Virus record (IMG/VR): IMGVR_UViG_3300045970_000794
Coordinates: 298,103 to 362,102 of that record
Direction: 5' to 3' (one strand)
Length of the DNA stretch: 64,000 bases
Of this stretch, positions 12,543 through 22,900 are shown piece after piece; within the stretch, counting starts at the first letter, position 1, and every line of letters begins with the position of its first letter. The position numbers and the translations under genes were made by a program. Below the pieces are notes generated by a model. That model was not told the origin of the DNA and did no database searches. It saw only the letters and a program-made list of their open reading frames with translations.

Positions 12543-13460
12543 TTAAATTTTATTATTTCTTACTGAATCTTTTATTTCGATATAAATGGTTGATGCCATT
12601 GGATATTTCTTCGTGACATCAAGTTTGATTTGCTCAATAGTATCTTCAATATCATAAGCTACTTCATCATCTTCAATATCCAATGATAATAATAACATGA
12701 ACTGGTTTTTACCTATGAACATTGTTTGAATCTTATTGATATGTTTTACCATATGATATTGCCCGATAATATGTTTAATATCATTTCTTATTTCCCTCGG
12801 GGCACTCTCACCAATAATTAACTTTCTGAGCTCATTAGAGAGCGTATAAGCGATTATCATCAGAATTAGACCTACAACTATGGAACCGATTGCATCGAAC
12901 ACTGGAGAGACTGTAACAGCTAAAATTGTGGTGATGGCTACAACGATTAATCCGAATAATGCAACCATATCTTCTAGGATAATAACCAATAGGTTTGTAT
13001 CACTAGTATCAATGATTTTACGGAAGAATGAATCCTTACTGATTGTTTTGAATTGATTATAAGCAACTCTGAATGAGTTGAACTCTAAAATGATACCAAT
13101 ACCAAGAACGATGAAGGACCAATAAACATGATGTATTGGTTCTGGCTTTGATAGTTTTTCAATTCCCTCATAAAGCGAATAGAATCCACCAACAAAGAAT
13201 AATAGTATTGCTACCATGAATCCCCAGAAATATTCTTCCTTACCATAACCGAATGAATGTAGTTCGGTTGGAGCTTTAGATGTTCTTTTATTACCAATCA
13301 ACAAGAACACTTGATTGCAACAATCAGCTGTTGAGTGAATGGCTTCGGCCAACATAGCAGTACTAGTAGTAACGACAGCTACAACGAATTTTATGGCTGC
13401 GATGATTGCATTACCAATAAGTGCGACCATAACGGCCTTCATTGAATTAGGTTTAGACAT
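12543..13460 (-). CDS. cation diffusion facilitator (CDF) family transporter
   Basis: AMLAEAIHSTAD, HSFGYGKEEY, ILED, FDAIGS; 6 TM segments plus C-terminal domain. Confidence 0.9.
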   Translation of the reverse strand: MSKPNSMKAVMVALIGNAIIAAIKFVVAVVTTSTAMLAEAIHSTADCCNQVFLLIGNKRTSKAPTELHSFGYGKEEYFWGFMVAILLFFVGGFYSLYEGIEKLSKPEPIHHVYWSFIVLGIGIILEFNSFRVAYNQFKTISKDSFFRKIIDTSDTNLLVIILEDMVALFGLIVVAITTILAVTVSPVFDAIGSIVVGLILMIIAYTLSNELRKLIIGESAPREIRNDIKHIIGQYHMVKHINKIQTMFIGKNQFMLLLSLDIEDDEVAYDIEDTIEQIKLDVTKKYPMASTIYIEIKDSVRNNKI

Positions 13461-14796: not shown

Positions 14797-15000
14797 TTAT
14801 TGAAGTTTACCTTTACAAATAACCATATCCAATTCATAGTTAGGTGGAAATTCACCTCGCCAATCACCATCAACGTTATGTTGACCTATATCAAAGCGAA
14901 CTGAATCGGCTATGATACCTTTGATTCTAAGATGGTCTTTAATTATATCAGAAATTTCTTCTGGAGTTAATCTAACTGTTATTTCTTTTTCGATTTCCAT
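14797..15000 (-). CDS. hypothetical protein
   Basis: 67-aa ORF. Confidence 0.55.
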   Translation of the reverse strand: MEIEKEITVRLTPEEISDIIKDHLRIKGIIADSVRFDIGQHNVDGDWRGEFPPNYELDMVICKGKLQ

Positions 15001-15035
15001 GACTATTTTGCTATTGATGTGTCTTTATCTTTAAG

Positions 15036-15218
15036 TTAAAAGATTTTGTTTTTAATATCACTTATAACATATAAAACAAGGCCAATGGCCATAGCAATTA
15101 AGAATATGACTGACTTAGTGTAGAAAATTTCAAAGTCATTGGCGTTAGCATTAACTAATGCTTGGATATAAAACCCAATAAAGAATGCCATTATGAATTT
15201 TGCGATATGTCTTAACAT
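15036..15218 (-). CDS. small membrane protein
   Basis: Two TM segments; follows promoter at 15241. Confidence 0.55.
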   Translation of the reverse strand: MLRHIAKFIMAFFIGFYIQALVNANANDFEIFYTKSVIFLIAMAIGLVLYVISDIKNKIF

Positions 15219-15289
15219 GATTTTAAGTATTAATTTGATGCAAAGATAATACAAATATTTTTAATAACCAAATTTTTTGTGAATTATTT

Positions 15290-15472
15290 TTAAAATGGTA
15301 ATATTTCTTTTGATTGTTCTTTTTCGTATTCCTTTTTGAATCGTTCAAATTCAGCATCAAATCCATTTCTAATAATGACAGCTGGATTGAAATTCTTAGT
15401 TTTCAACCAAGCAATTTTTCCCATTTGCTCAGCTGAAAACCTAATTGATTGAACTTGAGATTTTTGTTTCAT
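15290..15472 (-). CDS. putative ribbon-helix-helix DNA-binding protein at head of cassette array
   Basis: VQSIRFS (strand) + helix + NPAVIIR helix pattern. Confidence 0.5.
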   Translation of the reverse strand: MKQKSQVQSIRFSAEQMGKIAWLKTKNFNPAVIIRNGFDAEFERFKKEYEKEQSKEILPF

Positions 15473-15516
15473 ATTTGTAATACAATTATAACAGCAATAA
15501 GTAAGTTAGTGAGCAT

Positions 15517-15780
15517 TTAAGCATCACTATATTTAATAAACATAGTATCCATGAATTTTTTAACATCATTTAATTCACCTTGATAACATCTTCCCATACC
15601 ACAAATCGTATAAATTGGAAATTCGTTATCTTTTACATTTTCAAATATATTCAAGTTATGCTCTATTACAATCTTATAATCCCTATATGTTTCAATTTCT
15701 TCAATTTTCCCTTTAACAAAACGCTCACTAACATCGTGTATAGCACATTGCTGTTCATTTTTCAAATTATCTTTTTCCAT
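15517..15780 (-). CDS. cassette 1 hypothetical protein
   Basis: Starts inside site 1 (QCAIHDVS encoded by the arm). Confidence 0.7.
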   Translation of the reverse strand: MEKDNLKNEQQCAIHDVSERFVKGKIEEIETYRDYKIVIEHNLNIFENVKDNEFPIYTICGMGRCYQGELNDVKKFMDTMFIKYSDA

Positions 15781-15843
15781 ATTATTAAATTTAGTATTTC
15801 AAATTAAGTTCTCGTTGGCAACGTGCTATACACGCAGCCGTTA
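15729..15843 (+). repeat. attC-like site 1
   Basis: TAAC-at-CGTGTATAGCACATTGC ... GCAACGTGCTATACACG-cagcc-GTTA. Confidence 0.85.
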
Positions 15844-15851
15844 TGTTTAAT

Positions 15852-16016
15852 TTAATTTTTTAACCGCAATTTATCTCCCACCCATTCAAGTTCTATCATT
15901 TCATCATGTTTTCCCTTGTTAATAATATCCAGTGCTGTATCAACATCAGATAAATTGCTAACTACTTTCACCATTTCATCAAGAGTCATACATTTTAACA
16001 TTTCAAGTTTTTCCAT
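15852..16016 (-). CDS. cassette 2 hypothetical protein (54 aa, not in ORF track)
   Basis: MEKLEMLKC...GDKLRLKN*; fills the cassette. Confidence 0.6.
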   Translation of the reverse strand: MEKLEMLKCMTLDEMVKVVSNLSDVDTALDIINKGKHDEMIELEWVGDKLRLKN

Positions 16017-16047
16017 AAGTTTATCTATTAAAAATTAAACTAAAACA

Positions 16048-16160
16048 TAACAACAAATATAAGTTATTATTTTCAGTGTTCCAAATTAAATTATCTGTTT
16101 ATTTATACGTTTGTTTTTTAATTAAGTTTCAGTTATAACAACTTATATTTGCAACCGTTA
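16048..16160 (+). repeat. attC-like site 2
   Basis: TAAC-aa-CAAATATAAGTTATTAT ... ATAACAACTTATATTTG-caacc-GTTA. Confidence 0.85.
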
Positions 16161-16196
16161 GCAGCTATTAAAACAGTACGCTCGTTCCTCGCCTGC

Positions 16197-16457
16197 TAAC
16201 ATCGAATAAGAAAAATAAAAATTACTACTGTTGTGGTTCATCGAGTGGTGGTGGTTTTAAATACCATTTTCCGTTATCATCAACAAAAAAACTTTCAGGC
16301 TTCATCTGTTCATATCCCCAAGAACAAAAACCTTTGCAGTTTTTATTTTCGCATACATTATTAAATTCTCCCCATTCCTGTCCACACAATACACATATAA
16401 GTTTTTTTTCGTGTTCCATATACCGTAATTTTTACATTTTCTTATTCGCAGCCGTTA
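16197..16457 (+). repeat. attC-like site 3 (loop contains a whole gene)
   Basis: TAAC-at-CGAATAAGAAAAATAAAAATTAC ... GTAATTTTTACATTTTCTTATTCG-cagcc-GTTA. Confidence 0.8.
16225..16419 (-). CDS. small zinc-finger-like protein nested in site 3
   Basis: CVLC...CENKNC. Confidence 0.65.
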   Translation of the reverse strand: MEHEKKLICVLCGQEWGEFNNVCENKNCKGFCSWGYEQMKPESFFVDDNGKWYLKPPPLDEPQQ

Positions 16458-16670
16458 GGCGTAATTAAAAGTAATCCTAACTTTAGCCTTAAATTCTCTA
16501 TATCCGTTTTCGTTTTCAATAGTCATTTCTTGTAATATGTCCTGAATGAATATCAGTGCATCATCTGTTATTTCAGTTCCTTTAGGGTAAGTCTTTGAAT
16601 AACTACGCCTAACACCACCTATATTTAATTGCTGGCTATCTGCGTTATTAAAGGTCTGTTCGTTGTTCAT
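16455..16670 (-). CDS. cassette 4 hypothetical protein
   Basis: Starts in site 4 loop (QLNIGGVR); its stop TAA is the TTA of the cassette's GTTA. Confidence 0.7.
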   Translation of the reverse strand: MNNEQTFNNADSQQLNIGGVRRSYSKTYPKGTEITDDALIFIQDILQEMTIENENGYREFKAKVRITFNYA

Positions 16671-16734
16671 AATTTCGTGTAATTTGATAGTTTAGTATTT
16701 CAAAATCAGCAACTAAACATAGCTGTAACCGTTA
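16610..16734 (+). repeat. attC-like site 4
   Basis: TAAC-ac-CACCTATATTTAATTGCTG ... CAGCAACTAAACATAGCTG-taacc-GTTA. Confidence 0.85.
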
Positions 16735-16741
16735 GCAACAA

Positions 16742-16951
16742 TTAGTGCTGCCCATACCTCAAATGAATGTTATCATAATCTGTATCGTGATAAGCACCGT
16801 TCTCTTGTTTATGTTTCTTTATACATTGATATAAGTATATTTCGGTTAATCCTACCAAAGAACAATCACCTTTATCCCAACTATTATACAGTTGTTTAAT
16901 CTCATCATCGTTCAAATCTAATAAACTTTCTATTGTGTTCTTTTCATCCAT
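16742..16951 (-). CDS. cassette 5 hypothetical protein
   Basis: ATG at 16951 (MDEKNT). Confidence 0.6.
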   Translation of the reverse strand: MDEKNTIESLLDLNDDEIKQLYNSWDKGDCSLVGLTEIYLYQCIKKHKQENGAYHDTDYDNIHLRYGQH

Positions 16952-16966
16952 AAATCTAACTGTTGC

Positions 16967-17052
16967 TAACAAGCAATATATGTAATTGCCTATTAAGGTT
17001 TGTAAAATTTTTAAATTTTGTGCAAGGCAACTACATATATTGCCAACCGTTA
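16967..17052 (+). repeat. attC-like site 5
   Basis: TAAC-aa-GCAATATATGTAATTGCC ... GGCAACTACATATATTGC-caacc-GTTA. Confidence 0.85.
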
Positions 17053-17059
17053 GGTTCAA

Positions 17060-17353
17060 TTAAATTATTGTTTTGATTTTATTTAGATAATCAATATATC
17101 GAGAAGATGAACCGCTACCATACAATTTTTCAGCTTTCTCAGACATACCATATAAAGATATTAAAAAATAATCACCATATTCAGATGCTTTGTTCCTAAA
17201 TCCCCACATTTCATGTTGTCTTATCTGAAATTCATCTTCAGTGAGGTTATCCATATCAATAAATAATTTATCGTATGCTTCCCAAAATTGTGTCATCACA
17301 ATTCTAACTTCTTCTTTTAATTCTTGTGAAGTTGTTTGTTCTCTTATATTCAT
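17060..17353 (-). CDS. cassette 6 hypothetical protein
   Basis: 97-aa ORF filling the cassette. Confidence 0.7.
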   Translation of the reverse strand: MNIREQTTSQELKEEVRIVMTQFWEAYDKLFIDMDNLTEDEFQIRQHEMWGFRNKASEYGDYFLISLYGMSEKAEKLYGSGSSSRYIDYLNKIKTII

Positions 17354-17389
17354 ATTTTTTAATTTGTAAAATAATTATTTAACTAAACC

Positions 17390-17437
17390 TAACAAATGAT
17401 AAACAACATTAAAACGATTGTTTATCATCGGACGTTA
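17390..17437 (+). repeat. attC-like site 6 (minimal, 48 bp)
   Basis: TAAC-aa-ATGATAAACAA-cattaaaacga-TTGTTTATCAT-cggac-GTTA. Confidence 0.8.
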
Positions 17438-17458
17438 TGGCTCATTAAAACGAAGCCA

Positions 17459-17950
17459 TAACAGCAAATATAACCAATGCTGTCAGTGCTTCGATTTAAG
17501 TTTTGCGATTAAAAGTTTTTAAAAATTGCCATCGCACTTAAAAAGTTTCAAGTATTTTTCCTGTTGGTTCAACAAAATCAATTACACTTGTTTCACCATT
17601 TTCTTTTTCTACACCTATTTGCCCAGTTAACCTAGAATTAATAGTTTCAAATTTATGCAATTCGCATCTAAAAGAAAATGTATCTTTTAACTTGGTTTGC
17701 AACTCAACATTCCAACCGTCATTGGATTGGTCAAACAAATGGTTCAATGCAAATTCTTTAACAATCAATTTAACCATTTTCATTCTTAATGATTTTTTAC
17801 TTTTTACTTTCATACTTTTAATTTTAAATTTATATAAATATAATGTTTTTATTTAAGATAATCAATATTTTCTCACGCTATTTTTAAAAACTTTTTTGCG
17901 GTGTTTCAATTAAGCATTAGTGTTAGCACTGGTTATATTTGCAGCCGTTA
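17459..17950 (+). repeat. attC-like site 7 (loop contains a whole gene and an inner 16-bp inverted repeat)
   Basis: TAAC-ag-CAAATATAACCAATGCT ... AGCACTGGTTATATTTG-cagcc-GTTA. Confidence 0.8.
17538..17813 (-). CDS. hypothetical protein nested in site 7
   Basis: 91-aa ORF. Confidence 0.65.
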   Translation of the reverse strand: MKVKSKKSLRMKMVKLIVKEFALNHLFDQSNDGWNVELQTKLKDTFSFRCELHKFETINSRLTGQIGVEKENGETSVIDFVEPTGKILETF

Positions 17951-17953
17951 TGG

Positions 17954-18223
17954 TTAATTACCAATTCCAGCTTTGCATTTTGGACATTTAATATAACTAT
18001 CATGATTGTATCCGCAAAATGAACACTTACGTAATGGTAACTCAACCATAACATTAGATAAATCCAATTTTTTGATGTCATTAATTAAGCACAAAACTTC
18101 GTCTGCCCTTATATTATACGTTAGTGCATGGATATAATTATTTGCTTCGCTATTTATTTTTTCGTTATCTTTATAGTCACGAAGTTTTTTTTCCAATTCA
18201 TTAATTATTTAGTCTTTTTTCAT
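17954..18223 (-). pseudogene. cassette 8 gene with C-terminal zinc ribbon; in-frame TAA at codon 5
   Basis: ATG AAA AAA GAC TAA ATA ATT AAT GAA TTG...; could alternatively initiate at TTG 18196. Confidence 0.5.
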
Positions 18224-18261
18224 ATAATTCATTTTAAACTGTATTTATCTGAGTACCGTTA
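18049..18261 (+). repeat. attC-like site 8 (degenerate arms)
   Basis: TAAC-at-TAGATAAATCCAATTT ... AAACTGTATTTATCTG-agtacc-GTTA. Confidence 0.7.
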
Positions 18262-18543
18262 GTGGCAATTTTCTATGAACAGTCTAAACTTCTTACCATC
18301 TTTGGAAATAAATTCGATTGAGTTAGTATTTTGTTGTAAATTATCGTCTAACTCTTTTTGCTGTTGCATTTCTATTATAATTTTTCCGTAATCATGAATT
18401 GTCGCACATTCTTGTGGCTCATCGTTATCGAATTTAAACATAAGCCTTCCAGTTTGGTTAGCAAGTTTAAAACTGCCACTAACATCAGCTATATTCAATG
18501 CCGAGTTCTGTGGCGTAATTGAGTTTTGTTCTTCGTTTTTCAT
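18259..18543 (-). CDS. cassette 9 hypothetical protein
   Basis: Starts in site 9 loop (ALNIADVS); stop within GTTA. Confidence 0.7.
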   Translation of the reverse strand: MKNEEQNSITPQNSALNIADVSGSFKLANQTGRLMFKFDNDEPQECATIHDYGKIIIEMQQQKELDDNLQQNTNSIEFISKDGKKFRLFIENCH

Positions 18544-18603
18544 TTTATCTGTTTATTAAATTTTGAAATACAAAATTGGCACTAAATATAGCTGTAAACA
18601 TTA
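18480..18603 (+). repeat. attC-like site 9 (core G replaced by A)
   Basis: TAAC-at-CAGCTATATTCAATGCC ... GGCACTAAATATAGCTG-taaac-ATTA. Confidence 0.8.
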
Positions 18604-19575
18604 TACCCCATTTAAGAGCGACCCGAAAATGTGAGCGATTATATCAACAGTCCATCCGTTTCCGAGCATTTTTTTTGATTGGCTTTCTGAAACAATATCA
18701 GTAAAGTAATTTTCGGGAACTGTTTGTAATCTGCAATACTCTTTCAAAGTGTAATATCTAAATGGTAGCTTGTTTTTAAAAGCGTCCTTATGCCTACCTA
18801 TTGGCATTGTAGTTAAAACATTGTCTTTTTCAACAGTAGTTAGGCAGTTGCTTTTATTAGTGTTAGTTGCTCTTACTTCCAAGCATTGCGTAATCGGTAC
18901 ATCTTTGTTGTAGTCATCTCTTACACCTCGCTCATTCAATCTTCTACCTAAAATAGTAGCTTTATTCAACCTTCGCCCTCTTATTGCACTTGGGTTAATA
19001 AAATCGTCAGTTTCAAGTATATCAATAAGGTTTATTGCTTTGTCGGTTGGCTGTGTAATTTCAAAGTTTGCCCAATACAAACGAACCCTATTTTGTGCAG
19101 TAACTAAGCTACTGTTAATCGCAACAGGTTCAACCCCTAAATACTCGCTAATTACTTGCTCATATTCTTTTTTCATTACTACATTTTCAAGTAACCAGTA
19201 TTTAGGTTTCAATTCTTTAACCAATCTAACAAACTCAAAAAATAGTTTGCTTCGAGGGTCATCAAAGTTTAACTGTTTGCCACTAAAACTAAATCCTTGG
19301 CATGGGCTACCTCCAATCAATAAATCAACTTTAGGTAAGTCTTTTGCAAATACTTTAGTTACATCGCCTAATTGTATTGTTTTCGGGTAGTTGGTTTGTG
19401 TTACTTTAATAGCGTGTTTATCAATCTCACTCGCAAAGTAGTTATCATATTCAATCCCAACTCTATTAAGTGCTATTTGTCCACAACTCATTCCATCAAA
19501 AAGAGAAAGAACAGAAGAAAAACGGGGCATAACACCGTGTATAGGTAATGTGGGGTTTTGTGGTAATTCAATCAT
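18601..19575 (-). CDS. dcm: DNA (cytosine-5)-methyltransferase (cassette 10)
   Basis: LSLFDGM, EID, GGSPCQGFS, LENV, QNRVR, LGNGW motifs. Confidence 0.92.
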   Translation of the reverse strand: MIELPQNPTLPIHGVMPRFSSVLSLFDGMSCGQIALNRVGIEYDNYFASEIDKHAIKVTQTNYPKTIQLGDVTKVFAKDLPKVDLLIGGSPCQGFSFSGKQLNFDDPRSKLFFEFVRLVKELKPKYWLLENVVMKKEYEQVISEYLGVEPVAINSSLVTAQNRVRLYWANFEITQPTDKAINLIDILETDDFINPSAIRGRRLNKATILGRRLNERGVRDDYNKDVPITQCLEVRATNTNKSNCLTTVEKDNVLTTMPIGRHKDAFKNKLPFRYYTLKEYCRLQTVPENYFTDIVSESQSKKMLGNGWTVDIIAHIFGSLLNGV

Positions 19576-19653
19576 TTGTTCTCGTATTTAAGTTATTACT
19601 ATTTTGACAGGGTAGTGCTTCGTATTCCCACACTACCCATACACGAAACGTTA
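19530..19653 (+). repeat. attC-like site 10
   Basis: TAAC-ac-CGTGTATAGGTAATGTGGG ... CCCACACTACCCATACACG-aaac-GTTA. Confidence 0.85.
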
Positions 19654-19664
19654 TAAGTAATTTA

Positions 19665-19946
19665 CTAAATGTTTGGATGATTAGTAAAACATTTATTGCA
19701 TTGTTGATTATTTCTACTTATTTGAATTAATTCACCACCACAATCACATTTATTAAACATACTTATAACAGTAGGTATATTCAAATTTTTAACTCGTTCT
19801 TGTTCGTATTTAATACCTTCATCAAATGCTTCCAAAAACCAACCAAACCATTCGTCTTTAGCCATTTCACCACGCATATCTTTTGTTGGTAAATCGTCAA
19901 TTATCTTATTAATTATTTTATTTTTATCCATTTTAATTTCCTCCAT
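19665..19946 (-). CDS. cassette 11 protein with C-terminal zinc ribbon
   Basis: NLNIPTVI motif across half-site at 19766; CDCGG...CNKC. Confidence 0.65.
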   Translation of the reverse strand: MEEIKMDKNKIINKIIDDLPTKDMRGEMAKDEWFGWFLEAFDEGIKYEQERVKNLNIPTVISMFNKCDCGGELIQISRNNQQCNKCFTNHPNI

Positions 19947-22900
19947 TGTTAAGTAATGATTTTATGCCCTCATCTTTTAAAAGTAAGAGCATAATATCTA
20001 ATTCATTTTCTGTTATTGTTTCTTCGTCAAGTTCTGCTAATGACAAATACAATCTACGTTTTAAATCTAAAATTTCATCCATGTTAAATATCACCTTTAA
20101 GCCACAATTTATAATCATCTTCTGTCATTCCCAAATATGCTGATAAACTTAAAGTACTATCAGAATTATGCCATTCATCAATCTTATCATCAATGGTATC
20201 ACCAATGGTTTTAACATATTTAATTTTTAGATTCATTTCAATGGTGTGTTCTACCTGAGTAATCGCCCAGTCAATTTTATCAACATCCATTTGGTCAACA
20301 GCATCATTAATTGGTAAATCCAAATAATAATTAGAATACATTCTTTTAAACATTAAATGCTGCTCTTCAGTGCATTTAGCTAGAAGGTCTTTTAGAATAG
20401 TCTTAGCAGCTTTTATTAAAGTTTCGTTTTTCATATTATTTAAATAAAAGATTAAATAAATAATAGACTGGAGTTAGGAATGCGGGTGTTACATACAACC
20501 ACAATAAAACAGATACCCACCCTTCTTTATTGAATTTATACCTATCAAAAATATTAATATTTTTATTTTCGTCTTCTAGTGCCCACATAATTACGAAGCA
20601 ACTAACTACTAATGTATATCCCCACATATTATTTTATATTAAATTATTAAATATCATTTTCATCATCAATCACCCACCACATGAAACCACAGGCCAATCC
20701 AATTACCACTACTTGTATAAAAATTTCCATCATTATTTTATATTAACCAAAGTTTGTTAAAGTAATATATCTGATTATCAGTCAGATTCTTAACCCATTC
20801 ATCAAAATAGATATGATACTTAATCGAATTGTTTTCATACCATTCATATCTCAAATATTGATATAGCCTATCATTCATACTAATACAAATCAAAATCATC
20901 ACCAACAATTATCCACCATAGGACAATCAATACACCCATAAACATCATTAATTCCATGAGTTAAACTGTATTAATATTAAATTTAATAAGAATTACCATC
21001 TTCAACCAATCGTAAAACATTTCATCAGTGAACGATGCAGTCTTATCATCATTAGTTCTATAAACCGATTGACCATTTACTCTATAGAATAGGTCATAAT
21101 AGATTTTTAGAGTAACACCATCTTTACTGAAAACAACGTTGTTGAACTCACCGTCAGTTGGTGAATACGCTATACCGTATTTCTCTAAGGTAGTAACCAA
21201 TTTATTTATTGTATGCTCAAGTTTAGTAATTGGTGCCATTTTTATATATAATAAAGGTGAATATATTGTTTTTTATATGTTACCATTCCACTGCTATAGT
21301 GATGAAAATGAAATTCTCTAGTTATATCATCCTTATAAAGTTGATATGCGTAATCGACATCCATTAATTCTTTAGTTCCCATAATAAGATTAAATTAATT
21401 TCTACAAAGATAATACAAATAAGTTAATAAAACAAATTTTCTATCAAATATTTTTCATCTAAAATTTTGCGTGGGATTCCATGGCAGTCTAACCAATAAT
21501 GTATGATAATGTCAGTGAAGGGACTAATATTCCCAAACTCACCTTGCATTCTTCCATTTTTATCTGGAACCCTACCCATAAGTTGGTCATCTGTTAGTAA
21601 ATTCTTACGTTCTTCCCACGTCAATTCTCTATAATAATCCTCTTCATTCACTGAACTTATGACTTAACCTCAAATAAATCTTCGATATCATCATCATAAA
21701 TCCAATTAAGGGCTTCTTCAGCTCCACGATAGATAAGGTTATCTTCATCCATTTCTTCCCAATCACCTTCATTAATGTCCTCAAGGTTAGTTGAACCATC
21801 AAGAATTGATATCTTAGCATCAATGATTAAATGGTTAGGGTTACGAAATGTACTATACTCTGGTAGCCAAGTTTTCATGGCGGTTAAGCCATCAATTTGT
21901 CTTTGAATTGCTGCTTCTGTTCTCATTTTTGAAACGTTTATTAATAATACTTAAAACTTTATATAATATGAACAATACTAAAACTGAATCTACTATTGGC
22001 CATAAAATTGATAATATAATATAAGGTGTGACTCCATCGTCTTCATAATCATCTACATCGTAAGTGCTTTTAGCATTACTATTACCAATATTAATACTCC
22101 TAATAACCATTAGGAATATAAAGGTAACTACGAACCCGATAATATATGTTACTATGTATGTCATCACTCATTTAATTCTTCAATTATTGTATATTGTACT
22201 GGCGTTGATAATTCGATTTTATAACCATTAGTATTTCCACCATCGAATGTGTAAATGTTATCATAAAATAAATATGCGCCATCATCGATTTTGCAATCAT
22301 CACAATTAATTATTTCATCAAAAAGAAACCAACTGGTAGCACCACCAGTTAGCATTACTCTAACACGAAAAATCTTCTTTCTTCGATTCAAATATTCCGT
22401 TCGGAAGAAACCATTCATTACATGGGATTTGATTTGGTCAGCAGTTAAGCTTTCCTCACGATTTTCGGAACGATATAAACCATCATCACCTTTAAGCCAT
22501 AGTGAATCCCCATTCCTAGTTTTTGTAATGTCACGATATCCTATTTTATCCATATTTCCCATAATTTAATATTTTTATTATAATTTTTTCCAAGTAGAAT
22601 CTGGAATTTCATCTGGTTTTCTAAGATTATTGATAATTCCAACTTTACCATTATCCAATTCAAACCAAATAAATTTATTTTCTATGAATATACGAACAAT
22701 TTTATTAACGCCACTATCATATCCATATGAATATGTTCCACCCCATTCTATAGTATCACCAACACATATTTTACCATAAACAATGTGATTAGCTTCATTA
22801 ATACTATCTATACCCATTATTTTCCAATCTAATTTATCTTTCATAATTAAATTTTTACCAAACAAACCAAATAAAATACAAAGGTCCACCTATTACCATC

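Follow-up and report, generated by a model that had tools for sequence, protein, structure and literature searches.

Phage gene cassettes with reading frames that run through recombination hairpins

Integron cassettes are defined as promoterless open reading frames on the top strand followed by a recombination site, attC, and classical cassettes are mostly sense-oriented and end before that site. A 64,000-nucleotide stretch of phage DNA (positions 298,103 to 362,102 of IMG/VR record IMGVR_UViG_3300045970_000794; hereafter the window, whose coordinates are used throughout) raises the question of whether a recombination site can instead lie in front of its gene and be read as part of it. A first-pass annotation of the sequence alone pointed out six genes that cross a hairpin site in one fixed frame, with the core GTT always as a Val codon, and three genes that use the TTA of a core as their stop. 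It proposed that the site doubles as a translation-initiation region and N-terminal leader, that an [LC]xIxxV[SMRI] motif could flag such cassettes in protein databases, and that exchange at this core would give in-frame N/C-terminal swaps. On re-examination the observation proved correct, whereas its interpretation was borne out only in part.

Sites and genes of the array

The region at 15.5–19.8 kb of the window holds ten complete attC-like sites, one terminal half-site and eleven small genes, all on the minus strand. It lies in a complete 362-kb jumbo phage genome bounded by direct terminal repeats, probably of a phage of Bacteroidota. On the plus strand each site reads ACTnnnnnTAAC, a 3-nt spacer, the L'' arm, a loop of 11 to about 450 nt, the L' arm, GCARCC and then G↓TTAnnnnnAAT, where the arrow marks the cassette boundary. 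The R' of one site is complementary to the R'' of the next, which is the mark of cassettes cut and joined at G↓TT, and the R'(n)/R''(n+1) 10-mers match at 9–10 of 10 positions in most cassettes. The sites are recognizable as interleaved inverted repeats with conserved AAC and GTT cores and an unpaired central spacer, and 48 such sites were mapped in seven arrays.

The left boundary of the array (15505–15516, +) is an R'-type core (GTTAGTGAGCAT) with no L' arm or GCARCC spacer before it, which pairs with the R'' of site 1 (inverted repeat 15505/15719). Site 1 (15721–15851) has its R'' TAAC at 15729–32, spacer ATC, L'' from 15736, a 76-nt loop, L', GCAGCC and R' GTTA at 15840–43. Site 2 (16040–16168; TAAC 16048, R' G at 16157) is not read through. 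Site 3 (16189–16465; TAAC 16197, R' G at 16454) has a 222-nt loop that holds the whole gene 16225–16419. Site 4 (16602–16742; TAAC 16610, R' G at 16731) has an 86-nt loop holding the ATG at 16670, and is 86.5% identical to a site in L123, one of the compared array sequences (L122, L123 and L131), that carries an unrelated gene body. Site 5 (16959–17060; TAAC 16967, R' G at 17049) is not read through, and site 6 (17382–17445) belongs to a small class with an invariant 11-nt loop (bottom strand TCGTTTTAATG). Site 7 (17451–17958; TAAC 17459, R' G at 17947) has a 453-nt loop that holds gene 17538–17813. Site 8 (18041–18269; TAAC 18049, R' G at 18258) has a 173-nt loop, site 9 (18472–18611; TAAC 18480, degenerate R' ATTA at 18600–03) an 85-nt loop holding the ATG at 18543, and site 10 (19522–19661; TAAC 19530, R' G at 19650) an 86-nt loop holding the ATG at 19575. 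The terminal half-site (19758–19790) consists of R'' (TACTTATAAC) plus L'', has no L' partner, and lies inside ORF 19665–19946. All these sites are given on the plus strand.

We next asked which strand of the sites folds. Arm mismatches were G.T rather than A.C on the minus strand in a ratio of 68:8 in L stems and 53:9 in R pairs (p = 6e-13 and 1e-8), and for sites 4 and 10 the bottom strand, not the top, folded into the long stem, although this asymmetry fits RNA folding as well as single-stranded DNA folding. As for the extrahelical bases that set strand choice in the stems of classical sites, the L stems here are mostly perfect, and the only constant asymmetry is the 6-nt versus 3-nt spacer.

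The genes occupy this folding strand. Across 47 cassettes in seven arrays of five phage contigs, 46 have their best ORF on the minus strand, 15 straddle the R''–L'' arm and 7 stop at the TTA, so that antisense orientation is the rule and the site lies 5' of its gene. In the window, genes 15852–16016 (54 aa) and 16742–16951 (69 aa from ATG 16951) lie in the cassette body, as does 17060–17353 (97 aa), which is flanked by a 26-nt extended R'/R'' inverted repeat; the same flanks enclose a different gene in L122. Genes 16225–16419 (64 aa) and 17538–17813 (91 aa) lie inside the loops of sites 3 and 7.

No recombinase was found in the window, and searches of the whole genome revealed no intact tyrosine, serine or HUH recombinase, including no match to PF00589 or PF01797. 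The array is thus a CALIN, a cluster of attC sites lacking an integrase, and may be inactive in this genome. A 122-aa N-terminal remnant of a tyrosine recombinase (58% identity) lies beside a second small array of the same genome. In related phage contigs (G002 and G004), by contrast, Xer-like tyrosine recombinases of 268–297 aa lie immediately beside the same arrays, in the intI position and orientation. These proteins lack the IntI-specific insert: TIGR02249 and IntI4 (2a3v) align to them in two stretches with scores below the cut-offs, and the best match is XerA.

Reading frames through the site arms

All six read-through peptides were confirmed in minus-strand ORFs: QCAIHDVS (15517–15780, 87 aa), QLNIGGVR (16455–16670, 71 aa), KLDLSNVM (17954–18196, 80 aa), ALNIADVS (18259–18543, 94 aa), TLPIHGVM (18601–19575, 324 aa, a C5 cytosine DNA methyltransferase) and NLNIPTVI (19665–19946, 93 aa). 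In each, the GTT that is the reverse complement of the AAC in the TAAC core is a Val codon. Four of the six start at an ATG inside the site loop (15780 in site 1, 16670 in site 4, 18543 in site 9 and 19575 in site 10). The other two need qualification. ORF 17954–18196 is open only from a TTG, since an upstream in-frame ATG at 18223 is followed by a TAA five codons later, and it is possibly decaying; ORF 19665–19946 starts 177 nt beyond the half-site (R''+L'' at 19766), and its motif sits at residues 55–62 instead of the N-terminus. The three stops at 16455, 18259 and 18601 are the TTA of the preceding R' core, which for 16455 is that of site 3 and which at 18600 is degenerate (ATTA).

Six of six genes in one frame has a probability of about 0.004 on a naive 1/3 model. 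However, the other frames at these sites are often closed by stops, and choosing among the open frames gives about 1/12 for the five complete sites. The GTT frame is stop-free in 45 of 48 sites, against 21 and 31 of 48 for the other frames, and this includes sites that no gene reads through. Of the 15 straddling ORFs, 12 use the GTT frame, against 10.7 expected if each simply picked among the frames open at its site. The fixed frame is mostly forced and is not a special coincidence.

For 18601–19575 and 17954–18196 an ATG immediately follows the GTT (GTTATG), and a start downstream of the arm cannot be excluded for them. In the methyltransferase, a 15-aa leader crosses the arm, M16 lies inside the R'' sequence GTTATG and is invariant, and the Pfam domain starts at residue 22. 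In contrast, 15517–15780, 16455–16670 and 18259–18543 have no further in-frame ATG until residues 62, 49 and 35, respectively.

Modular leaders and cassette boundaries

The earlier annotation had suggested testing whether the same body occurs with different leaders, and this came out positive both ways. In the family of 18259–18543, whose leader MKNEEQNSITPQNSALNIADVSGS is coded by the loop, L'', spacer and R'' and whose last residues NCH and stop are coded by the R' box, we found 28 distinct leaders in 29 sequences, 16–50 aa long, all in frame and with indels in whole codons. The body is 0.91 conserved against 0.54 for the loop-coded part. Conversely, the identical 24-aa leader heads three unrelated proteins (P0041–P0043), one of which was confirmed at the DNA level with the L' partner upstream, showing that the motif is linked to hairpin sites elsewhere. 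Consistently, 16455–16670 and L123_2682 share only residues 1–24, and the methyltransferase family has at least four leader classes, all in frame. In the AlphaFold model, residues 1–21 have pLDDT below 50 and the predicted beta domain starts near residue 30.

The arm that is read through is not where whole cassettes are bounded. Homology between arrays ends at the GTTA of R', the stop-codon end; a contig from another sample matches the methyltransferase cassette starting exactly at 18601; and the 18259–18543 cassette occurs with different neighbours on both sides in five contigs. Ordinary cassette exchange therefore moves the ORF together with its leader and gives no N/C-terminal swap. Nevertheless, in-frame leader/body mosaics do exist, whatever their mechanism, with breakpoints at or next to the R'' core. 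The same body and R boxes occur with an unrelated L module and leader in L131, with the breakpoint at the spacer/GTTA junction; an identical L module occurs with three different R'' pentanucleotides; and an identical leader, R'' and R' enclose different bodies, with both junctions in frame. Breakpoints of the second kind lie inside the R boxes, not at G↓TT.

Interpretation and relation to known systems

Taken together, we favour, with reasonable confidence, a model in which this region is an integron-like array whose coding strand is the one that folds, the analogue of the integron bottom strand. Read in the direction of its gene, a cassette begins with its recombination hairpin and ends at TAA↓C, and a gene can lie in the body, inside the loop, or start in the loop and run through L'', spacer and R'' into the body. 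In this last class, about a third of cassettes, the site would supply the ATG, a hydrophilic, disordered leader of roughly 15–25 residues whose last ten or so ([LC]xIxxV[SMRI]..) are dictated by the arm sequence and, in some cassettes, the last codons and TAA stop at the far end. In this view the frame is the same everywhere because the site consensus is free of stops only in that frame and because these sites share ancestry. The site grammar, strand asymmetry, gene placement, leader modularity, maintenance of the reading frame and boundaries at G↓TTA rest directly on the sequences, whereas it is inferred, without direct observation of recombination or translation, that a Xer-like integrase, present beside the arrays in relatives and truncated here, moves the cassettes as folded single strands, that translation starts at the loop ATG, and that the loop may also carry a promoter. 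Support for the latter is modest, as the promoter-like motif is only about 3-fold enriched, in 13 of 40 loops.

It remains possible, though we consider it unlikely, that the leaders are annotation artefacts and the real starts lie downstream of the arm, the upstream frame being open only because the site consensus happens to lack stops in it. The openness of the GTT frame whether or not a gene uses it, the invariant M16 of the methyltransferase, the ATG after the GTT and upstream stop of 17954–18196, and a Met at residue 25 of L123_2682, just after the arm, would fit this reading. Against it, three genes lack a nearby downstream ATG, 28 leader variants stay open and in frame in the loop-coded part that the stem does not constrain, and no homologue was called from Met35 in a search that would have admitted a protein starting there. 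A role of the hairpins in the mRNA alone, in translational control, processing or stability, without recombination in this phage and with the ORF starting in the loop so that ribosomes can load in an open loop and melt the stem, is also doubtful. In its favour, the folding strand is the sense strand, both L stems and gene-flanking R pairs tolerate G.U-type pairs, this genome has no intact recombinase, and short ORFs in attI1 and attC of class 1 integrons help translation through site hairpins (PMC8876359). However, such a role does not explain the integrase beside the arrays in relatives, the same cassette with different neighbours in five contigs, the homology breaks exactly at G↓TTA, or sites of the same grammar in unrelated phage types; the two roles do not exclude each other.

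The suggestion that the fixed frame is an adaptation, with both R' and R'' as crossover points shuffling leaders and bodies in frame, is supported by the mosaics but also appears unlikely, given the near-chance use of the GTT frame and the breakpoints inside the R boxes. Homologous recombination between similar sites, or the process that makes new cassettes, would give the same mosaics, and in classical integrons only one R box of the folded strand is cleaved. A still broader hypothesis, equally improbable on present evidence, is that the site is a portable expression-and-tagging module of start codon, disordered leader, C-terminal codons and stop, and perhaps a promoter, in which recombination at either core reassorts leaders and bodies in frame. 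This would make it a natural site-specific system for building fusion ORFs in phage accessory genes, run by a Xer-like recombinase that evolved single-strand hairpin recombination independently of IntI.

Integron-finding tools and expression models assume sense ORFs ending before attC, and cassette callers built on this expectation will mis-annotate these arrays, in which the gene rule is inverted and the site itself is inferred to be translated. The arm-derived protein motif can be used to find such cassettes in metagenomic protein sets, and two families here already have dozens to hundreds of members. The overlap of stem pairing and coding places a double constraint on the sequence, visible as compensatory changes that are synonymous, and is a clean case for studying how structure and code co-evolve. 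The arrays also show how large phages of Bacteroidota may trade small accessory genes, including methyltransferases, and a cultured relative (Polaribacter phage P12002L) together with the intact integrases in related contigs makes the crossover point and translation start directly testable.

Hairpin elements of the IS200/IS605 or REP/RAYT type rely on an HUH (Y1) transposase, for which the genome gave no PF01797 match, and the R'(n)/R''(n+1) rule is not a feature of those elements. A search of Rfam 15 covariance models returned no match at E <= 0.1 in 15000–20500. Promoter-early stem-loops (PeSL) in hyperplastic regions of T4-like phages likewise precede small accessory ORFs with a repeated hairpin-plus-promoter element and are shuffled modularly between phages, but by homology, and are not known to have AAC/GTT cores, the R'(n)/R''(n+1) rule or an associated tyrosine recombinase. 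Cassettes with their own promoters in sedentary chromosomal integrons (PMC13108822) also do not depend on the platform promoter Pc. Toxin–antitoxin cassettes are often inverted, but inverted cassettes are a minority class in chromosomal integrons. ORF-11 and ORF-18 in attI1, and short ORFs within attC, of class 1 integrons (PMC8876359) similarly place a translation initiation region and a short ORF across the core, with the GTTRRRY core supplying a stop codon, and help express cassettes lacking their own initiation region. There the peptide is separate, acts by translational coupling, and is read from the top strand mainly at attI, whereas here it is fused in frame to the predicted cassette protein, read from the bottom strand of attC-type sites, and found at many positions in an array.

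The closest systems are integron cassette arrays and CALINs, including those reported in phages (Qi et al. 2023, PMC9892861). They share the folded R''–L''–loop–L'–R' sites with AAC/GTT cores and an unpaired central spacer, the match of R' to the next R'', preferential bottom-strand folding, an integrase gene at one end divergent from the top strand, and small cassettes mostly of unknown function plus DNA methyltransferases. The present arrays differ in the bottom-strand position of their ORFs (46 of 47), in ORFs that start in the loop or lie wholly inside it, in the conserved 6-nt spacer GCARCC against 3 nt on the other side, in R boxes extending to 12–26 nt, and in the Xer-like integrase of relatives; that paper does not describe the orientation rule or the coding overlap. 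P12002L_attC1, a site of this family, was the only one of six phage sites for which Qi et al. verified no IntI1 attI1/attC junction. Phage P12002L, listed there, carries sites of exactly this grammar on the strand opposite its genes, and its attC1 has the same 11-nt loop as site 6 of the window.

Site grammar and gene placement in the window array

The 362,102-bp virus record, of which the window forms the last 64 kb, has direct terminal repeats, is rated complete, has about 30% G+C and comes from a pond metagenome. Nearly all genes in the window are on the minus strand, including a 305-aa ORF at 12543-13460 (-) that looks by eye like a cation-diffusion-facilitator membrane transporter, an unusual cargo for a phage. 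A loose 10-mer search (GCANCCGTTA, 2 mismatches) gave mostly chance hits outside 15.8-18.0 kb. Inverted-repeat analysis revealed two interleaved sets of repeats between 15.5 and 19.8 kb, which resolve into ten complete sites with one grammar on the + strand: ACTnnnnnTAAC, a 3-nt spacer, an L'' arm of 11-20 nt, a loop of 11 to 453 nt, the L' arm, a conserved 6-nt spacer GCARCC, and then GTTAnnnnnAAT. The core that follows one site (R') is complementary to the R'' core of the next site and not to its own, and the 10-mers match 8-10/10 in the window and 9-10/10 in most of the 47 cassettes compared. This is the signature of integron cassettes joined at G|TT, with the + strand corresponding to the classical top strand. 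We also considered a double-stranded, dif-like reading of L'-GCARCC-R', but set it aside because the L arms covary within sites instead of being conserved between sites. The array starts with an R'-only core at 15505 and ends with a half-site at 19766 that has R'' and L'', for which no L' partner was found anywhere nearby. A 60-aa ORF at 15290-15472 (-), which looks by eye like a small ribbon-helix-helix-type DNA-binding protein and has no similarity to the integrase, abuts the left end of the array, where relatives have the integrase.

Mismatches in the arms are A.C on the + strand, which is G.T on the minus strand, with counts of 68 to 8 in the L stems and 53 to 9 in the R'/R'' pairs (p = 6e-13 and 1e-8). 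For site 4 (16602-16742) and site 10 (19522-19661), only the minus strand folds into the long stem, although free energies of folding compared with shuffles were not informative because the large loops dominate the energy. So the analogue of the recombinogenic bottom strand is the sense strand of the genes. No Rfam family matches the region, and Pfam and PHROGs searches gave nothing for the small cassette proteins apart from the methyltransferase.

The first-pass annotation had listed six peptides read across the site arm, and this observation was confirmed: all six are present, and in all six the GTT of the core is a Val codon. Four of these ORFs start at an ATG in the loop (15780, 16670, 18543 and 19575), while 19665-19946 runs through the terminal half-site from 177 nt upstream. 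The sixth, 17954-18196, is open only from a TTG; an ATG at 18223 is followed by an in-frame TAA five codons later and the ORF then reopens at the TTG, which may represent a decaying cassette gene or a short upstream ORF. Three ORFs end at the TTA of the neighbouring R' core (16455, 18259 and 18601). The other five genes do not cross an arm: 15852-16016, 16742-16951 and 17060-17353 lie in the cassette body, and 16225-16419 and 17538-17813 lie wholly inside a site loop. No gene in the window array crosses the L'-GCARCC-R' arm, while in the relatives three short ATG ORFs start at or beyond L'.

Related arrays and their recombinases

A first gapped pattern scan of viral contigs returned 119 loci, of which only 4 had paired arms, the rest being chance. 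The DNA pattern scan and its follow-up found arrays of the same grammar in a 122.6-kb fragment (G002, at least 23 sites in two arrays), a 47.7-kb fragment (G003), a complete 45.7-kb phage (G004, 7 sites), a 213.9-kb contig (G001), the 462-kb uncultured phage LR756500.1 and the cultured Polaribacter phage P12002L. One G004 site ending in GTTATGCCCCAT looked like a second copy of the methyltransferase cassette, but it is followed by an unrelated gene, so the shared core is a coincidence. Of 47 cassettes in 7 arrays, 46 have their best ORF on the bottom strand and none on the top strand; 29 ORFs lie in the body, 15 straddle the R''-L'' arm, 2 lie in the loop, and seven end at the TTA of R'.

In G002 and G004, a tyrosine recombinase gene lies immediately at one end of the array on the strand opposite the sites, which is the position and orientation of intI. 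These proteins are 268 and 297 aa long and Xer-like: the best NCBIfam model is archaeal XerA, below its cut-off, the best solved relative is XerA (4a8e), and the integron-integrase model and IntI4 (2a3v) align only in two stretches, so the IntI-specific insert is missing. We further searched the genome under study for an enzyme, including serine and HUH recombinases, and found no intact tyrosine, serine or HUH recombinase. It does keep a 122-aa open frame that is 58% identical to the N-terminal domain of the G002 enzyme and retains only that domain. This remnant lies next to a second small array at genome positions 15098-17046, outside the window, with two complete sites (15.5-17.0 kb) and a terminal half-site. 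The window array is therefore a CALIN. Candidate attI regions were seen at three array loci (ARRB 15434-15486, L121 about 1545-1582 and L120 about 262-298), where the integrase start codon lies 28-52 nt from the first G|TTA, with an ATATATA-like box 3-5 nt before the GTTA.

Integrase homologues of about 40% identity occur in Cellulophaga and Polaribacter phages. Polaribacter phage Freya carries such a homologue but showed no sites of this exact grammar in its first 9 kb. The near-identical phages Freya_1 to Freya_10 (MT732463-MT732472) differ by up to 5 kb in the stretch upstream of their integrase homologue, which could be a variable cassette region with a different site grammar. In the genome under study, an intergenic repeat of about 60 nt (for example at window 15220-15290), at which contigs of the source run break, is present in at least 20 copies and reads TTTG-N20-TATCTTTG on the gene strand, the Bacteroidetes promoter consensus. 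The host is therefore probably a member of Bacteroidota, which is an inference. When we tested whether the loops carry a promoter of this type, a TTTGRAA motif was only about 3-fold enriched and the -33/-7 spacing did not fit, so a loop promoter remains inferred.

Reading frame, leaders and their reassortment

Reading the arm on the gene strand, the frame with GTT as a codon is free of stops in 45 of 48 sites, including sites that no gene reads through, while the other two frames are open in 21 and 31 sites, because the conserved TATA(R) of the L box and GTTA(G/TAA) of the core make stops in those frames. Of the 15 straddling ORFs, 12 use the GTT frame, against 10.7 expected if each simply used one of the frames open at its site. 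Seven of the eight sites where only the GTT frame is open belong to straddled sites, and four of these seven (16610 and 18480 in the window, 2622 in the related array locus L123 and 721 in the related array locus L122) share a similar L'' arm and an 85-90-nt loop. So the [LC]xIxxV motif is the translation of the arm consensus, inherited with the site.

We next asked whether the leader is translated. For 15517-15780, 16455-16670 and 18259-18543, the next in-frame ATG is 62, 49 and 35 codons into the ORF. A database search with 18259-18543 found 43 proteins, of which 29 (query included) that share its body were aligned. They carry 28 different leaders of 16-50 residues, all continuous with the body, with length changes only in whole codons. 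The majority-residue fraction is 0.54 in the loop-coded part, 0.75 in the arm-coded part and 0.91 in the body, and none of the proteins is called from the internal Met, although the length filter would have admitted such proteins. Five contigs carrying these genes show the L' partner arm upstream, together with compensatory changes in the stem that are synonymous in the leader, such as GCT to GCC paired with A to G in L'. An AlphaFold model built on this alignment gives pLDDT below 50 for residues 1-21 and predicts a beta-rich domain from about residue 30. Close homologues of the methyltransferase (18601-19575) likewise have at least four leader classes, all in frame. However, Met16, which lies in the R'' sequence GTTATG, is invariant and the Pfam domain starts at residue 22, so its true start could be either the ATG in the loop or Met16.

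The leaders are modular. The exact 24-residue leader of 18259-18543 heads three unrelated proteins. In one of them (contig L130), the DNA is identical through the 12-nt R'' box and again from the 12-nt R' box, which codes the shared C-terminal Asn-Cys-His and the stop, with a different body between, in frame at both ends. Conversely, in contig L131 the same body, with R boxes that carry a compensated change, follows an unrelated L module and leader. The gene 16455-16670 and an ORF in L123 share residues 1-24 (58% identity) and nothing else, while their sites are 86.5% identical from R'' to R'. Cassette 17050-17434 and a cassette in L122 share 26-33-nt extended R'/R'' flanks and an identical small site but enclose different genes. 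Of 14 cassette pairs with L modules at least 85% identical, 13 have unrelated bodies, and 7 differ in at least 2 of the 5 variable R'' bases.

Cassette joints and comparison with known integrons

Homology between arrays ends at the GTTA of R', and a contig from a different freshwater sample, 91% identical to the methyltransferase cassette, starts to match exactly at 18601, the TTA. The 18259-18543 cassette, with its site and leader, has different neighbours on both sides in five contigs, where homology ends at TAAC|spacer upstream and TAA|C downstream. Whole cassettes are therefore bounded at R', the stop-codon end of the gene, while the arm that is read through stays with its gene, and ordinary cassette exchange does not split the ORFs. 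Nevertheless, the mosaics show that leaders and bodies have been reassorted, with some breakpoints at the spacer/R'' junction and others just inside the R boxes. Cleavage at R'' (for instance by rare top-strand recombination), homologous recombination between similar sites, or an as yet undefined process that makes new cassettes could each have produced them, and the present data fit all three.

Taken together, the observation extends to a family of phage arrays, whereas its interpretation in the first-pass annotation was only partly right. The antisense orientation and the site-encoded start and leader are real as judged from sequence, and the test proposed there, whether the same body occurs with different leaders, came out in their support. 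By contrast, the fixed frame follows from the site sequence, and the read-through core, at which the in-frame swap was proposed, is not the normal exchange point. The site grammar, the gene orientation, the modular leaders and the whole-cassette boundaries are seen in the sequences themselves, while recombination of the sites and the position of the translation start are inferred without direct evidence. The arrays are of the integron/CALIN kind but have a Xer-like enzyme in relatives, genes on the bottom strand and sites that are apparently translated.

Integron components in phages have been reported previously, in a study that lists 17 CALINs, including one in Polaribacter phage P12002L (Qi et al. 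2023, PMC9892861). That paper notes divergent attC directions in P12002L but does not describe an orientation rule or translation through the site. In class 1 integrons, ORF-11 and ORF-18 in attI1 and short ORFs in attC supply initiation regions and take stop codons from the core (PMC8876359), but those peptides are separate and act by coupling, not as fusions. In P12002L we found sites of the present grammar on the strand opposite its genes, flanking a methyltransferase gene. Its attC1, the only one of six sites for which Qi et al. verified no IntI1 attI1/attC junction, has the same 11-nt loop as window site 6 (17382-17445). In this small site class, also present in L121, L122 and L123, the 11-nt loop (bottom strand TCGTTTTAATG) is invariant while the stems covary, suggesting that the loop itself is recognised by something.
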